A stretch of 64,000 bases of DNA from the IMG/VR virus record IMGVR_UViG_3300038465_000091, positions 62,001 through 126,000 of that record; one strand, given 5' to 3'. Shown one piece after another: positions 58,461 to 64,000 of the stretch (its first letter is position 1; every line of letters starts with the position of its first letter). A program made the position numbers and the translations under genes. Under the pieces are notes generated by a model. The model was not told the origin of the DNA and did not search any database. It saw only the letters and a list, made by a program, of their open reading frames with translations.

Positions 58461-59290
58461 GGTCGTCCCGGATAGCCGTTACGCGGTTTGCCCTCACCTA
58501 ACCGCACCCGCTCATACTTATCGAACTCACAAAGGCAATTCTGGAGGTCCTGCATGTGGATTTCCGGCATACCCACGTTGGCGACCAATGGTTTGATCTG
58601 CCGCCGCAGGTCGAGCATGGTGTCTAACCACATTGACTCTTGCCAGCTTTGATCCACGGGGTAATTCATGACGCGATTCAACCCGCGTTTACTGCCCGGT
58701 CCGCTGCACGCCCAGTCCGACCAATCCACACAGTTTTCAAGTAGGTAGGTGTATTTCGTGTCGCACACGATTTGTCCCCCGAGAAAGCTGCCCAAGCCGT
58801 TAAACTCGGTCAGACGTTTGTGGAAGGTCGCAAGGCTCCACGCTTCTTCGGTGATGTAGTCGCGTTGACACCAAAGAGGGTTGAGAACTTCGCTGGCGAG
58901 ATACCTCGCCTTGGATGCAAATCCTGCCTTTGCGGGTACGATGTAGACGCCCGTGAAGACTTTCTCTTTCGCCTGCTTGCGGCGTTCGAGCACTTCGACG
59001 AAATGCATCGGGTCAAACGGGACGGGGTAGCCAAGCTCTTCGAGCGTGTCGGGCCAATTTACGAGACGGGCGACTGCCATCGCAAACCATACCTCAGGTT
59101 CATCAACGTGTGGTTGACGCCAGTTCTTGGCAATCCACTGCGTCACCTTGTCAAGTTCACGATACACGTTGCAGAAACGATAGGCTTGCAGGATGGGGTC
59201 TTCTGTCCAAGGTTTCGGGTACCCAGCGGTTTTGGCTTCGTAGATCGCGTGCCGTTCGGTGATCCATGCAAAAAGGGCTTCAATTCTCAT
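58457..59290 (-). CDS. Amino acid:DNA transferase-like protein (aGPT-PPlase1 / 5-hmdU kinase helical-domain family; thymidine hypermodification)
   Basis: ERHAIY......PKPWTEDPILQAYRFCNVYRELDKVT...NWP...FTGVY...GLGSFLGGQIVCD...GPGSKRGL...QNCLCEFDKY. Confidence 0.85.
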   Translation of the reverse strand: MRIEALFAWITERHAIYEAKTAGYPKPWTEDPILQAYRFCNVYRELDKVTQWIAKNWRQPHVDEPEVWFAMAVARLVNWPDTLEELGYPVPFDPMHFVEVLERRKQAKEKVFTGVYIVPAKAGFASKARYLASEVLNPLWCQRDYITEEAWSLATFHKRLTEFNGLGSFLGGQIVCDTKYTYLLENCVDWSDWACSGPGSKRGLNRVMNYPVDQSWQESMWLDTMLDLRRQIKPLVANVGMPEIHMQDLQNCLCEFDKYERVRLGEGKPRNGYPGRP

Positions 59291-59350
59291 CTTTTCAATA
59301 ATACCACAATTCTCTTCACTTTCGACTATATTACTGAGGACCTTTTCCTG

Positions 59351-61069
59351 ATGAACCCGCTTTTCCAGAAAAAGACAAACGACGAACAAGACCCCATCAT
59401 CCTGCCGCAAGATGATAACCAGCAAGGGGATATGCTCGATCCAGCTACCCAACAAGTTGTCGCTCCACCGCCCGTAGCTCCCGCCGAGGATGAGAAAGTC
59501 GTCGAACAGAGTCGGATGGCAGCCCAGAAAAGCGCGGCTGCTCATACCCCATGGGATGTCTACCTTCGAGGGAAATGGGTCAATCGTGTTTTTACGGTGC
59601 CGAACATGACTGCCGACGACGTGAAGCGTGGTCTGGTAGATCATGATGGTCTCAACCCAGCCATTGAAGTGCGGTCTGGACAGGGGCGAAACGTCCCGGG
59701 TAGTGTCCCACTCAATCGGATAGGCTCCAACCCCCTACTTCAAAAAAGGGGTGCGGGTGCACCTATTGGCATGGATCAGGATCAGCAGACCTGTCGCAGA
59801 TGCAAACAGCCGATTCAACAGGGCCAAATGGTTTCGTGGGAAAGTGGTAGTGAGACTCACGCGGGCGTCTGTCCACCTCCACCCCCAACCGCCGTAAAGG
59901 AGCAGAGCCGTCTCATGTTTCCTAAGGGGTATGAGCCAAAGCAACCGCCAACGGCCCCCCAGCGGCCCCAGAAGCCCCCTACGCAGCCCCAGTACGCTTC
60001 GGCTGAGAAAGTAGCCACACGACGTAAGATCAGCGGCTACGTGCCCGCCACAAGCTGGGGCGTACCGCAGGAATGCGCTCATCAAGTTGCCCATGCCCTT
60101 GCCAACGCGGGTGTGCGTGATTTTGACGTGGCGACGGACGAAAAACTGCATGTGGCATACTTTTCATTCGGCAACGAGGTCGAGATGGAGGTCAGCGCAG
60201 ATATTGTTTGTGAATACTTTGGTCCTCAGATCGCCGCATCCAAGGGCAAATGGATTGGTTGGCAGTGCCGTCCCGAGCGCCAACCGAGAGTGCCTGACGT
60301 GAACATGCCACTGAGCAAGATGAATAGCAAGCGGGCTGGCAGCCAAGGCACCCGTGAAGCCGTCGCCAAGTTGCAAAGACTCGGCATCAAGACTACGGCG
60401 GACCTCGACAAATGGATCAAGGAGCACCCGAAGACTGAGACCAAGGGACCCTACGCGGGCTCGCGGTCGCTCATGAGCCGTTACGACGCCCTGAACGAGC
60501 TTGTGGGCACCTTCGCCGCCACGTGGATTCTACACGATTTGGCGACCGACGCCGCTGTTAGGGAAGGGCTCCCCAAGAGAGGATTCTTCTCCCCCGAGGA
60601 TGCCAAGCGGTTCCGCGACGACAATCAGGGCAGCAACGTCGCTTTGAATCAGGATGAAGAGGGCAGCCAACTGTGGGAGAAAGTGCCCGATAACGAGTTA
60701 CTTAGGAAGAAAGAGGGGGCGGTTCCGCCTCCCCCACCTCAGCCGCCAGCTTCGCATGTCAGGGAAGCACCAGCACCTCGCAAACCCGCCCCGCCGCAGG
60801 GTTCGCCGAATGTCACCTTTCCATCGGACATGCCTGACATTTATATTGGAGGTGAGCCGCCACGAGGCGCACCAGCGGATTTCGGTGGGGCTGTCTTCCC
60901 CAATCCAAAGGGGTTAGCGCCAACGCTGGATACAGCCCCGCCTCCACCTCGGCCTGAGCTTAATGCAACCCATGAAATGGGCGTATATAAGGGCGATATG
61001 AAAATGGACATGACCAATGCAGACGTGTCGGACGTGGTGCCAAACCCATTGCAGCCCCGTGAACAGTAA
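59351..61069 (+). CDS. Proline-rich modular protein (probable head-associated protein)
   Basis: GAGG RBS then MNPLFQKK; short domains separated by low-complexity linkers. Confidence 0.7.
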   Translation: MNPLFQKKTNDEQDPIILPQDDNQQGDMLDPATQQVVAPPPVAPAEDEKVVEQSRMAAQKSAAAHTPWDVYLRGKWVNRVFTVPNMTADDVKRGLVDHDGLNPAIEVRSGQGRNVPGSVPLNRIGSNPLLQKRGAGAPIGMDQDQQTCRRCKQPIQQGQMVSWESGSETHAGVCPPPPPTAVKEQSRLMFPKGYEPKQPPTAPQRPQKPPTQPQYASAEKVATRRKISGYVPATSWGVPQECAHQVAHALANAGVRDFDVATDEKLHVAYFSFGNEVEMEVSADIVCEYFGPQIAASKGKWIGWQCRPERQPRVPDVNMPLSKMNSKRAGSQGTREAVAKLQRLGIKTTADLDKWIKEHPKTETKGPYAGSRSLMSRYDALNELVGTFAATWILHDLATDAAVREGLPKRGFFSPEDAKRFRDDNQGSNVALNQDEEGSQLWEKVPDNELLRKKEGAVPPPPPQPPASHVREAPAPRKPAPPQGSPNVTFPSDMPDIYIGGEPPRGAPADFGGAVFPNPKGLAPTLDTAPPPPRPELNATHEMGVYKGDMKMDMTNADVSDVVPNPLQPREQ

Positions 61070-61120
61070 GAAGTTAAATATTCCTAGCCAAAATCCTCAG
61101 ACTTCTGGTATCATGTAATA

Positions 61121-61390
61121 GATGGTCGTAAGCCCCGCAAGGGGTAAAAGGCACTGGTACTGATTTTCAGACAGGGGTTCGACTCCCCTCAGGTCCACCA
61201 TAAATTTTTGCACCACCTTATGGGCCTGCCCCGGTTTCGATGGAGACGGTATGGGATGGCAGCCAGCGACCCGAGCGCAAGGGTGTACCCTCGTTAAACA
61301 GGCATTCAAAAAAGTAAACGCTGAAGCTCCAAAGGCTTTCGCTGCTCATGCTTAATGAGCCAGACCCCGTGGGTCTGTTCCTCAACACGG
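61121..61390 (+). ncRNA. ssrA: Circularly permuted two-piece tmRNA; tag (A)AEAPKAFAAHA
   Basis: Acceptor piece ends ...GACAGGGGTTCGACTCCCCTCAGGTCCACCA (61200). A 21-nt spacer follows, then the coding piece starts GGGCCTG (61222), which pairs with CAGGTCC (G3:U70). Tag ORF at 61320-61355 follows GTAAAC. Outer boundaries are approximate. Confidence 0.9.
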
Positions 61391-61396
61391 CAAGAA

Positions 61397-61422
61397 CGCC
61401 CGCGCAAGCGGGCATTTTTGTT
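61397..61422 (+). terminator. Intrinsic terminator after tmRNA
   Basis: GCCCGC-GCAA-GCGGGC-ATTTTTG. Confidence 0.8.
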
Positions 61423-61467
61423 TCTGGTTGACAATCTGAATTCCAAAGGCTAGTATAGGGGCACATT

Positions 61468-62529
61468 ATGGCAAACGACAAGGTTAGGGAAGCACTCAAA
61501 GCCGCCGCGAGCTTCAAGGCACGCGGCATCAAGAAAGCCGCTCTGGGCGTAGTTGCGGAGTACGAAGCGAAGAAAGCCAAGGACTACGACGACATCAACG
61601 GCTCCAAAGACAAGTGTGCCGACTGCGGTGTCAAATCCGGCAAGCCCCACAAAGAATCCTGCAATGGTGGACTGCACGATATAAAGTCCAAGAAGGCCGC
61701 TCCCGGCGATCCGATCCAACGTGACCAACCCGCCGCCCAAGCCGACCCCGCCATCCCCGATCCGACTGCTCAACCTGCCGCTCCCGTTGCCCCACCCGTG
61801 GAAGAGGTCGAAGAGGCAGAGGAGACTCCCGAAGCTAAAGCCGCTCGCGTGCGTGAAGCACTTGAGACCGAGTTAGGCGACGACGATCTGGTGACGGCTG
61901 TCCTCGAATTTCTGGAAGCCGAAAAATTCGACTACGACGATTACAGCGTCGATGTCACGGATAACAGCGACGGCACAGCCACGGTCGCTGGCTACATCAT
62001 TGCCCCCAACGACGACATTCCAGAAAGCATCGCTCTGGCACAGGTCCGTAGCGATTTGGAAAGCGAGCCTGAGCTTTTCAATCAGGATTGGCTCCAAGGA
62101 CACATCGACGAGGTGCGCCTCCGTGACCATCTGTACTCAGACACGGAGGAAATGATCCGTGATTCCCCCGACTCTTATGGGTGGGTGCCCGGAGGCGGCG
62201 AAGAACTCGTCCGCTTTAACGCCGAGGGTGAAGAAGAGGATGACGGCGAGTACGATTCGGCTGGTGAGCCCATTGTAGAGGAGACCGAACCCTCCGACGA
62301 CTGGCTTGAAGAGAAGACCAATGAACTCCTCCGCTATCCCGTGCAATACCTGACGGACATGTTAGGCGAAGAGGACGGCATCAAACAGGCGATATCGATT
62401 GCTGGGATCGACATTAACGCAGCGGCAGAAGAAGCGGTTGCAGCCGATGGCTGGCAGCACTTCCTGTCCCGTTATGACGGAAACTCGTACGATCTCGCTT
62501 CTGGCGGGGTTTATTGGCGAGAAAATTAA
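61468..62529 (+). CDS. Acidic hypothetical protein with basic N-terminal leader
   Basis: 353-aa ORF; basic N-terminus with CxxC..H..C, acidic C-terminal domain ending HFLSRYDG. Confidence 0.75.
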   Translation: MANDKVREALKAAASFKARGIKKAALGVVAEYEAKKAKDYDDINGSKDKCADCGVKSGKPHKESCNGGLHDIKSKKAAPGDPIQRDQPAAQADPAIPDPTAQPAAPVAPPVEEVEEAEETPEAKAARVREALETELGDDDLVTAVLEFLEAEKFDYDDYSVDVTDNSDGTATVAGYIIAPNDDIPESIALAQVRSDLESEPELFNQDWLQGHIDEVRLRDHLYSDTEEMIRDSPDSYGWVPGGGEELVRFNAEGEEEDDGEYDSAGEPIVEETEPSDDWLEEKTNELLRYPVQYLTDMLGEEDGIKQAISIAGIDINAAAEEAVAADGWQHFLSRYDGNSYDLASGGVYWREN

Positions 62530-62530
62530 C

Positions 62531-62737
62531 ATGAGCCAAATCAGTCCCGTCTACCACGTAAATCGTCATGGTGGTGCGGCCTGTGAGCACTGTTTGGGTA
62601 TTGTCCGCTGCGCCTCGTGGTGCCTCACCAAGAACACTGAAATTTTCTACGCCTACGACATCCTTGTCCATCCAGAAACCCTGACCGAACAAGATAGAAT
62701 TACTCTTCACGCTCTCGGCGTGCTTTGGACTAACTAA
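62531..62737 (+). CDS. Small Cys/His-containing protein
   Basis: CEHC...C...C. Confidence 0.6.
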   Translation: MSQISPVYHVNRHGGAACEHCLGIVRCASWCLTKNTEIFYAYDILVHPETLTEQDRITLHALGVLWTN

Positions 62738-62763
62738 AATCCTCAAAAAGCGGTATTATCTAA

Positions 62764-63009
62764 TAGCTCCGGTGACCGTGGGCAGCAGCCGTTTCTGATT
62801 CCGAAAGTATTCCCACGGGTGTATCTGACTTTGCCATGGGCAAAAGGGTTGCTGGTGCCCTCCGTGGTCGGTTCGCAAACACACCGTAAGCACCGCGATG
62901 GGTCGAAAGCGAACTAGGCCCTCCTTGGTTTCAGGAATAGGCTGAGGCGTCGGCGGTGGTCAGGCGGTTGAGCCATGGTGACCGAGACGGAACTCCATGG
63001 CCGGAGCTA
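62764..63009 (+). ncRNA. Unidentified ~245-nt structured RNA
   Basis: Terminal stem TAGCTCCGG/CCGGAGCTA starts right after a GGTATTAT promoter motif; several internal helices. Confidence 0.6.
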
Positions 63010-63024
63010 ATTTTAGGAGAAAGC

Positions 63025-63801
63025 ATGAATCTCAAGTTTTGGGAGTGGTTTAAGAAAAAACAGGAGACCGATCCAACTCTCCTCGATCCTTTCGAAGGCA
63101 GCGTACTCAAAGAGTATCAGGATGCCGTAGGAATACGGCGTATCCCGATGCAGGTCACTGATCGCCACGATCTCACCACGAGTGAAGTCGCCAACCCCGA
63201 CCTCGGTAAAGATGATGCCGAGACTCTCAAGAAGAAACTCAAGTCCGGCATCCACCAGTCTGTTATGACTGGTCCCGATACGCACAGAGTCAGCGGCGTG
63301 CGAGTAATATCGGAAGAGGGCGGCACTGTCGAGGTCATCAAAAAGATCGACAAGTCCAAGCTGTACGAACTTGGCTATGACATTACGGAAGAAAATGAAA
63401 CTTTCGTGAAGAACCTTGGATTAGAGCCTGAACCTTCGCTTTTCCTCGGACTCTCTCAAATACGGAAAAACGTGGAAGGTACGTCAGAGGAAGAGCGACT
63501 TCATTCAGAAGGCGTTGACTTCCATCACTACTCAGGTAAGCCTGCAAATCGTCCTTCGGAAATGCAGCCCAATGAACTAATGGGGGGTTCGGAGCCAGCC
63601 GAATCGTATCCGACTGCCGTGGCTGAACTTGTTGTGCCTGAACTGGAAGAAAGCATCAAGGCCAGAATTGAGGCATTCCACGCTGGAGCCAAGAATCATG
63701 ACCCCTCGTGCCCATGCTACGAGCATTGCATGGAGCATATCGACAAGTTGGGTCAGGAGTACGACTGCTTCCACGTCTGTAACTGCAAAGGGAAACAATG
63801 A
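63025..63801 (+). CDS. Hypothetical acidic protein with Cys/His-rich C-terminus
   Basis: AGGAG RBS, MNLKFWEW... Confidence 0.7.
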   Translation: MNLKFWEWFKKKQETDPTLLDPFEGSVLKEYQDAVGIRRIPMQVTDRHDLTTSEVANPDLGKDDAETLKKKLKSGIHQSVMTGPDTHRVSGVRVISEEGGTVEVIKKIDKSKLYELGYDITEENETFVKNLGLEPEPSLFLGLSQIRKNVEGTSEEERLHSEGVDFHHYSGKPANRPSEMQPNELMGGSEPAESYPTAVAELVVPELEESIKARIEAFHAGAKNHDPSCPCYEHCMEHIDKLGQEYDCFHVCNCKGKQ

Positions 63802-64000
63802 CGATCAAGGGGACCTTGCACTTGTATAGCGAGACGGGAACCGAAGGCGGCTATTGGGCGATTCAGGATGAGCGGTTCATTCAACCGCCGACCGAGGAAT
63901 GGCCGCATGAGCGGTGGTCCTACGACGGTCTACATGCTCTCAACGACGGCGACCACCTGAAAATTTTCCATCCTGACGGCACGCTCCTGTGGGAAGGTGA
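63798..64000 (+). CDS. Hypothetical protein (partial; runs off the window)
   Basis: ATGA overlap; MTIKGTLHLYSETGTEGGYWAIQDERF... open to the end. Confidence 0.6.
   Translation, partial: MTIKGTLHLYSETGTEGGYWAIQDERFIQPPTEEWPHERWSYDGLHALNDGDHLKIFHPDGTLLWEG

Follow-up and report, generated by a model that had tools for sequence, protein, structure and literature searches.

The question raised by this locus is whether the roughly 245 nt between two same-strand open reading frames (ORFs) of a viral genome encode a structured RNA and, if so, of which kind. The analyzed stretch of DNA (64,000 nt, hereafter the window) comprises bases 62001–126000 of the 223.5-kb IMG/VR virus record IMGVR_UViG_3300038465_000091. 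The completeness of this record was estimated at 71%, which indicates a jumbo phage. The DNA runs with this stretch all originate from peat or permafrost metagenomes (20 runs, 17 studies). A preliminary description, made from the letters alone, had proposed a complex noncoding RNA with its own promoter and without a recognizable family, and had listed a closing stem and several further pairings. The listed sequence elements (GGTATTAT, the stem, TTTT, AGGAG, and ATG) are all present at the given sites, and the locus is laid out as follows.

62753–62759, + strand: −10-like element GTATTAT, within GGTATTAT (62752–62759)
62765–63008, + strand: structured RNA, 244 nt, bounded by the outer bases of the closing helix P1 (covariance model R1, covariation)
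63011–63014, + strand: U-tract TTTT after P1, a possible weak terminator or 3′-end signal
63015–63019, + strand: Shine–Dalgarno sequence AGGAG
63025–63801, + strand: ORF cl3, 258 aa, ATG at 63025, no Pfam or PHROG match

The stop codon of the upstream ORF is located at 62735–62737, and the downstream ORF has its own Shine–Dalgarno sequence and ATG. The exact ends of the RNA are those that we infer.

Homologues were sought first with the upstream 353-aa ORF and then with short invariant motifs of the RNA used as DNA patterns. Public collections were searched with exact patterns, and the matches were scored with the covariance model R1. The family comprises 10 distinct full-length copies of 244–305 nt (the window, L003, L004, L009, L030, L032, L033, L036, L034 (= L021), and L039 (= L047)) and four copies cut by contig ends. 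All members were confirmed with scores of 175–302 bits; in the window, R1 matched positions 62759–63013 with 300 bits. Each genome contains a single copy, and all copies are found in uncultivated jumbo-phage or peat/soil contigs. A BLAST search of the RNA region against 50,697 phage records gave no match. Prokaryotes were scanned as well, with 185,579 species represented by one genome each and with a pattern that recovers every phage member except L039 (9 of 10). The two resulting matches were rejected as chance matches (only 14.7–18.3 bits with the model over a 35-nt motif). The viral contigs L040–L045 and L048–L051, obtained in loose pattern scans, were also discarded as chance matches. The RNA is carried by a narrow clade of peat/permafrost jumbo phages.

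Folded as a single sequence, the RNA reached a minimum free energy of −104.6 kcal/mol (z = −2.47; 3 of 200 shuffled sequences folded as well), and the minus strand a z of −1.49. Single-sequence folding is mildly unusual and proves nothing alone; the comparative evidence is decisive. Covariation was measured in the 10 related sequences as pair counts against column-shuffled and slid controls. Across eight core helices and two pseudoknots, 96.4% of the cells form standard pairs. Changes on both sides were found in 28 of 62 pairs, compared with 10.1 ± 2.2 in column shuffles (0 of 500 reach 28) and 2–6 pairs in the slid control, in which the partner was moved by 1–3 columns. In an alignment of nine sequences that includes the P3 subdomain, both sides changed in 30 of 72 pairs. 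The alignment supports the helices P1, P2, P3, P3b, P3c, P4, P5, P6, P7, and P8 as well as the pseudoknots PK1 and PK2.

62765–62772/63001–63008, + strand: P1, closing stem AGCTCCGG/CCGGAGCT, 8 bp, five with compensatory changes
62776–62818, + strand: P2 hairpin (62776–62782/62812–62818), 7 bp, 100% paired, three covarying
62789–62795/62984–62990, + strand: PK2, 5′ strand in the P2 loop and 3′ strand in the P8 loop, both sides changed in four of seven pairs
62819–62882, + strand: P3 domain with P3 (62819–62822/62879–62882), P3b (62833–62839/62862–62868), and P3c (62845–62848/62858–62861)
62870–62876/62909–62915, + strand: PK1, 5′ strand leaving the P3 domain and 3′ strand in the P6 loop, five covarying positions
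62883–62968, + strand: P4 domain, with four of the five pairs of P4 (62883–62887/62964–62968) covarying
62891–62896/62953–62958, + strand: P5, inside P4, 100% paired
62900–62904/62917–62921, + strand: P6 hairpin, inside P4
62923–62929/62941–62947, + strand: P7 hairpin, inside P4, 100% paired
62973–63000, + strand: P8 hairpin (62973–62978/62995–63000), 6 bp, 100% paired, three covarying

A five-way junction with linkers of 0–4 bases joins the helices P1, P2, P3, P4, and P8. P4, P6, and P7 contain conserved G·U pairs; on the opposite strand these would become C·A, which identifies the + strand as the RNA. The compensatory exchanges are extensive: CCGU/GCGG in P4 is replaced by GGGG/CCCC, and PK2 (CCGUUUC/GAGACGG) changes to AGUGU/ACACU in L009. 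PK1 (GGUUCGC/GCGAACU) reads GGUUUGC/GCAAACU in L009, GUUCCUA/UAGGAAU in L034, and GUUCUUC/GAAGAAU in L039. A structured RNA conserved in fold across the 10 full-length copies, as envisaged in the preliminary description, is strongly supported by this covariation. The pairings named there fared differently. GGTTCGC/GCGAACT corresponds to PK1, CCATGG/CCATGG to P8, and CCGTTTC/GAGACGG, which had been offered as an alternative or pseudoknot pairing, to PK2; all three covary. CCGTGGG/CCCACGG is also a real, covarying pairing, but as the ordinary helix P2 and not as an alternative. The closing stem of 9 bp is reduced to the 8 bp of P1, a helix supported by covariation in the 10 homologues, since the ninth pair, T–A, exists in the window only. 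Two pairings present in the window were not retained: TTTGCC/GGCAAA is missing from L004 (GGATCAAA), the helix P3b (GCCATGG with CCGTGGT) taking its place; GGGCA-GCAGCC/GGTTGC-TGCCC is not preserved in L009, and its second segment is the hairpin loop of P3c. P3, P3b, P3c, P4, P5, P6, and P7 had been missing from that list. In L034 and L039, a three-way junction larger by about 50 nt replaces P3b and P3c, so this region is peripheral.

Long single strands are invariant or nearly so. The 29-nt loop of P2 contains near-invariant GCAGCAG and CCGANAGUA in addition to the 5′ strand of PK2, and the P8 loop (16–18 nt) contains invariant UGAC, the 3′ strand of PK2, and invariant GAACU; UGAGCC is a further strand of this kind. 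To judge from the alignment, these strands point to tertiary contacts or to a binding or active site. The linker UGA(C) occurs twice, once between the 5′ strand of P1 and P2 (62773–62775) and once between the 5′ strand of P8 and PK2 (62979–62982), which makes the fold look pseudo-symmetric. Three further pairings were considered and rejected. A third pseudoknot resembling P4 of RNase P (AUUCC in the P2 loop with GGAAU in the P7 loop) is given no support by covariation, and the pairing of CAGCAG with GCUG in the P3c loop is lost in L009. An alternative helix between the 5′ strands of P2 and P8 is possible in most sequences because both are CCRYGG-like.

The same data bear on the possibility that the region is not a functional RNA at all but a protein-coding frame or a DNA site such as an origin, a pac site, or an operator. 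Minus-strand ORFs of 40–45 aa exist, and the frame of cl3 can be extended to a GTG at 62956. The compensatory changes, however, link strands as much as 240 nt from each other, those of the two pseudoknots among them, in a pattern made strand-specific by G·U pairs; indels of 1–50 nt between homologues ignore the reading frame, and the region is present in RNA libraries. Substitutions that are compensatory and, like the indels, disregard the frame rule out the coding explanation, and a nonfunctional or DNA-level role as a whole is extremely improbable.

The nucleotide identity of the RNA to five relatives (71%–98%) is higher than that of every neighboring segment, including the tmRNA gene. Typical values for the RNA are 89%–98%, compared with 71%–86% for the flanking genes (cl1, cl2, and cl3) and 79%–87% for the adjacent tmRNA gene. 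For three relatives, the values are as follows.

L004: RNA 93%; cl1/cl2/cl3 75%–86%; tmRNA 86%
L032: RNA 98%; cl1/cl2/cl3 80%–81%; tmRNA 79%
L030: RNA 91%; cl1/cl2/cl3 71%–84%; tmRNA 80%

The preliminary description had found no family for the RNA, and the comparison with Rfam 15 (4227 models) agrees with this. At the gathering threshold, only tmRNA and tRNAs were detected in the whole window; at E ≤ 10, no model matched in the region 62500–63300, and nothing overlapped the RNA in L047, L034, and L033. Accordingly, no match at E ≤ 10 was obtained for the RNase P classes, tmRNA, SRP, 6S, and group I/II introns, nor for self-cleaving ribozymes, riboswitches, GOLLD, ROOL, OLE, raiA, HEARO, pRNA, and Y RNA. 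Some of these candidates were rejected on additional grounds. For RNase P RNA, no CR-I/CR-V P4 arrangement was found by eye; a GAAAGU-like stretch lies inside the P2 hairpin loop, but by eye in the alignment its candidate partner in the P7 loop shows no covariation. A tRNA or tmRNA is excluded because ARAGORN made no call at 62765–63008, no conserved CCA follows P1, and no tag ORF is present. For a group I intron or another self-splicing element, the flanking ORFs have their own stop or their own start. For a retron, no msr model in Rfam matched and no RT domain was found near the RNA; the 10 neighboring ORFs examined (window and L032) have no Pfam match, so none of them shows an RT domain. 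The RNA family is new in the sense that it has no detectable relative in Rfam 15; no new function is demonstrated.

Transcription of the RNA was considered from its flanks. The element GTATTAT or GTATCAT is located 5–14 nt 5′ of P1 in 9 of the 10 homologues (GTATCAT in L039), and L009 has GTATTGA. A canonical −35 box is absent upstream of the RNA. In L039, the −10-like element directly follows the intrinsic terminator of the tmRNA gene, so transcription must begin anew there. The sequence GGTATTAT occurs 12 times in the 223.5-kb genome, and several intergenic copies have an upstream AAAATC block, as at the RNA. The conserved −10-like element, the layout in L039, and the family of similar genome sites support the promoter that the preliminary description had assigned to the RNA. 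In the genome (G000), a promoter-like intergenic block consisting of AAAATC(T), about 12 nt, and TGGTATTAT recurs, with examples at the following positions.

119039, 124753, 127074, and 131651 of the genome, + strand: AAAATC(T)/TGGTATTAT block
24554 and 20541 of the genome, − strand: AAAATC(T)/TGGTATTAT block

The recurrence of this block without a canonical −35 box suggests extended −10 or phage-specific promoters.

On the 3′ side, a run of 3–6 U is located 0–9 nt past P1 in all 10 homologues. A canonical terminator between the RNA and the next same-strand ORF was found in none of them, and this ORF, preceded by a Shine–Dalgarno sequence, begins 6–25 nt past P1. Any transcript that enters this ORF necessarily has the RNA as its 5′ part, so that the RNA serves, at least for a time, as a 5′ leader. 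It might act in cis, as a riboswitch-like aptamer, an attenuator, or a processive-antitermination element controlling read-through into cl3, cl9, a PTH2-like gene, and the tRNA arrays; one mode could be a ligand- or factor-dependent stabilization of P1 beside the U-tract. In 10 of 10 homologues, the RNA is immediately flanked by a promoter on its 5′ side and by a same-strand ORF on its 3′ side, with no canonical terminator before the latter, which is what such a leader would show, as is the U-tract past P1 in all of them. In L033 and L034, GGAG of the 3′ strand of P1 is the sole Shine–Dalgarno-like sequence, and the many invariant unpaired bases resemble an aptamer core. The large riboswitch aptamers (the lysine five-way junction, cobalamin, FMN) share the position between promoter and ORF, the multi-way junction closed by P1, the long-range loop–loop pairings, and the many invariant unpaired bases. 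Unlike these, the RNA precedes unrelated, unannotated ORFs, shows no clear conserved expression platform, and has no bacterial copies in the stringent scan. As regards such a platform, the homologues all have the U-tract past P1, but no canonical terminator, and their Shine–Dalgarno sequence lies mostly outside P1. No conserved alternative pairing hides this sequence, which usually lies 6–12 nt outside P1, and a P1 enclosing 230 nt would be an odd terminator stem.

Four peat metatranscriptome assemblies were inspected over 61000–63900; they consist of contigs only, without strand or true ends, and their depths are rough.

X12: RNA contig 62773–62921, depth 115.5; flanking ORFs 2.3–2.8
X19: three RNA contigs within 62807–62988, depth 16–27; flanking ORFs 3.1
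X13: RNA contig 62782–62918, depth 5.3; flanking ORFs 5.5 (about equal)
X14: no RNA contig; flanking ORFs 2.8–5.3, upstream ORF covered

In three of the four libraries, contigs are confined to the RNA body (62773–62988), and in two of them the depth is about 5–50 times that of the flanking ORFs, a ratio that conserved sequence common to related phages could inflate. None of the four RNA libraries contains a contig within 190 nt upstream or 330 nt downstream of the RNA (with 62552–62745 and 63037–63327 both empty), and none contains a contig of the tmRNA gene (61104–61446). Taken together, the libraries argue with moderate strength for a stable RNA that accumulates on its own. The sharp drop of RNA depth past the element is also what attenuation would predict. 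As a separate observation, the contig in record 10 of X19 matches only 62862–62891 (30 nt, to the start of P5), and the 167 nt that follow are unrelated. Either this contig is chimeric, or it represents a relative whose 3′ half differs.

The genes around the RNA are relevant for a cis-acting role as well as for a role of the RNA in its own right. They follow the usual order cl0, permuted tmRNA, cl1 and cl2, the RNA, a small ORF, cl3, cl9, cl5, cl24, and tRNA arrays, although cl1, cl2, the small ORF, and cl3 are each absent in some genomes.

61104–61446, + strand: permuted (two-piece) tmRNA gene, Rfam RF04321, 69.7 bits, terminator at 61398–61413
127235–127540 of the genome (65235–65540 in window numbering, outside the window): PTH2-like gene cl5
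268–681 of L013, − strand: PTH2-like gene cl5
722–1045 of L047, − strand: PTH2-like gene cl5

The ORF directly after the RNA belongs to at least five unrelated families among the homologues, and cl3 is found within 0.8 kb 3′ of the RNA in 8 of 10 (absent in L034 and L039). The functionally coherent downstream genes typical of a riboswitch aptamer were not found, the next ORFs being unrelated and without Pfam or PHROG match. Riboswitch classes are normally widespread in bacteria, whereas the scan of 185,579 prokaryotic species (one genome per species, pattern recovering 9 of the 10 members) detected no copy of this RNA. A cis-acting leader is also opposed by the unrelatedness of the ORFs that it would precede and by a conservation of the RNA exceeding that of the genes supposedly under its control. 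We consider a cis-acting leader the main rival of the explanation favored below, but rather doubtful. A stable RNA is somewhat favored over a gene-specific riboswitch by the varying identity of the next ORF, by the extreme conservation, and by the way the RNA accumulates in RNA libraries.

The permuted tmRNA gene lies upstream on the same strand in 9 of 10 loci; the tenth, the 2.6-kb L033, is too short to show it. The distance between tmRNA and RNA ranges from 93 nt (L047) to about 2.2 kb. In L034 and L039, cl1, cl2, and cl3 are absent, yet the tmRNA–RNA pair is kept, and two related genomes without the RNA also have no permuted tmRNA. The RNA was found in none of 79 other viral loci with the permuted-tmRNA pattern, which shows that the linkage is specific to the clade. 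Since all 10 genomes are related and have a common synteny, the linkage could be inherited gene order. A duplex prediction between whole sequences of the RNA and the tmRNA of its own genome was uninformative. The tmRNA tag determined by ARAGORN reads AEAPKAFAAHA, and the tags in homologous phages end with AAHA or MAAAA.

A small protein of the cl5 type is encoded downstream of the RNA in all clade members. It matched Pfam PF01981 with E = 3.8e-4 and 21.1 bits, below the cut-off of 23. The predicted model has a low pLDDT of 50.6, and its best PDB matches (E 0.013–0.5) are almost all PTH2, among them 2zv3, 1q7s, 1rlk, 3erj, 1wn2, and 1xty. On the basis of these model comparisons, cl5 is probably a divergent PTH2 peptidyl-tRNA hydrolase. 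The called start and frame of cl5 are provisional, as the called ORF is without the N-terminal strand and helix in several genomes.

With separate accumulation and a neighborhood of RNA genes in view, catalysis has to be weighed. The RNA might be a ribozyme that excises itself from a polycistronic transcript or that processes precursors of tRNA or two-piece tmRNA in an RNase P-like role; this reading overlaps with that of a stable RNA. To our knowledge, few natural RNAs of comparable size combine a multi-way junction with two covarying pseudoknots and dozens of invariant unpaired bases, and those of known function are mostly ribozymes, riboswitch aptamers, or RNP cores. Natural ribozymes typically show such a size, a compact, doubly pseudoknotted fold, and many invariant unpaired nucleotides; the neighbors are genes of RNAs that need end-processing, and the RNA accumulates separately from its flanking sequence. 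Nevertheless, Rfam gave no match, including to the RNase P classes, group I, glmS, HDV-like, twister, hatchet, and pistol, and neither a CR-I/CR-V nor a P4 arrangement of RNase P was seen. The sequence 5′ of P1 is not conserved, and a 9-nt block of most homologues is missing in the window, which argues against a defined 5′ self-cleavage site. A ribozyme is thus an unlikely explanation. RNase P RNA and tmRNA, both stable RNAs, resemble the present RNA in being closed by a terminal helix, pseudoknotted, and encoded with tRNA genes.

The explanation that we regard as the best, with confidence evenly divided between acceptance and doubt, is that of a stable RNA with transcription of its own, which would function as a folded particle in a phage translation-RNA island. 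Transcription would start a few bases past the conserved −10-like GTATTAT, so that P1 would form the 5′ end of the RNA. The 244 nt would then fold into the five-way junction clamped by the two loop–loop pseudoknots. The compact body closed by P1 might outlive the downstream message, either by partial termination at P1 and the U-tract or by processing. Its action would most likely be in trans, either as a folded RNA particle or as a scaffold of an RNP, perhaps with a link to translation or ribosome rescue. The island to which it would belong comprises the permuted tmRNA, the RNA, the PTH2-like peptidyl-tRNA hydrolase, and the tRNA arrays.

Stable RNAs from phage tRNA regions have precedents. 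The phage T4 RNAs C and D (species 1 and 2) are stable RNAs of about 120–140 nt whose function is unknown; they are embedded among tRNA genes and cotranscribed with their neighbors. We know of no sequence or fold relationship between them and the present RNA. The phi29 pRNA (RF00044) is likewise phage-encoded, has its own promoter, and needs a loop–loop pairing for its function, but it measures about 120–174 nt, lies at the genome end by packaging functions, and has no Rfam match to the present RNA. No packaging genes were recognizable near the RNA in Pfam or PHROG searches.

In genomic context, the closest counterparts appear to be GOLLD and ROOL, of which the present RNA would be a small analogue. 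Both are described as RNAs of phages, encoded near tRNA islands and of unknown function, that form RNA-only cages (bioRxiv 10.1101/2024.12.08.627333). GOLLD (RF01998) and ROOL (RF03087) are likewise phage- or prophage-encoded, have elaborate pseudoknotted folds, and usually lie beside tRNA islands; the present RNA is found on viral/metagenome contigs between tmRNA and tRNA arrays. No protein partner is known for either. In contrast, GOLLD and ROOL measure about 580 to more than 800 nt compared with 244–305 nt, and neither RF01998 nor RF03087 matched. The present RNA is limited to one peat/permafrost phage clade.

A bolder version of this interpretation, which we regard as speculative and improbable, would place the RNA in a third class of phage tRNA-island RNAs, smaller than the other two and endowed with its own biochemical activity, either as a ribozyme or as a particle binding ribosomes, tRNA, or tmRNA. 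Together with the two-piece tmRNA, the PTH2-like hydrolase, and the suppressor-containing tRNA set, it would reprogram or rescue host translation in the course of infection. In any case, this is a giant-phage-specific RNA that is more conserved than any neighboring gene, lies in an island of translation genes, and is seen in environmental RNA. Its size of 244 nt offers a tractable way into the question of GOLLD and ROOL function and makes it a good target for structure determination.

Several minor observations were made on the neighboring genes. No Pfam, PHROG, or PDB-sequence match was obtained for cl0, cl1, cl2, cl3, cl9, and cl24; an atlas search with cl3 gave no match, and cl24 yielded a poor predicted model without a fold match. 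In all related phages, the tmRNA is closely preceded by cl0, which in the window is a 765-aa ORF at 58772–61069 (+ strand). The C-terminal part of cl0 is conserved, its long middle is Pro/Gln-rich and of low complexity, and its length varies from 338 to 1013 aa. The 68-aa ORF cl2 (62531–62737, + strand) lies directly 5′ of the RNA in 8 of 10 genomes; its conserved motif CxHCxGIxRHxxWC resembles a zinc ribbon. In L047, a weak tRNA-like match to the mascRNA model (E = 0.12) was detected some 200 nt downstream of the RNA (1249–1306, − strand).

Ten tRNA genes form a co-directional array approximately 4 kb downstream of the RNA (L174 4025–8552; 129024–133552 of the genome). This array includes a tRNA with the anticodon CUA, which is of the amber suppressor type ("Pyl" by ARAGORN). 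Despite this tRNA, the ORF statistics of the genome gave no signal of TAG read-through or recoding. Another tRNA of the array has an 8-nt anticodon loop (ctag). Five more tRNA genes, for Cys, Asp, Ala(UGC) (two genes), and Val, are located on the minus strand at 235–1775 of the window.
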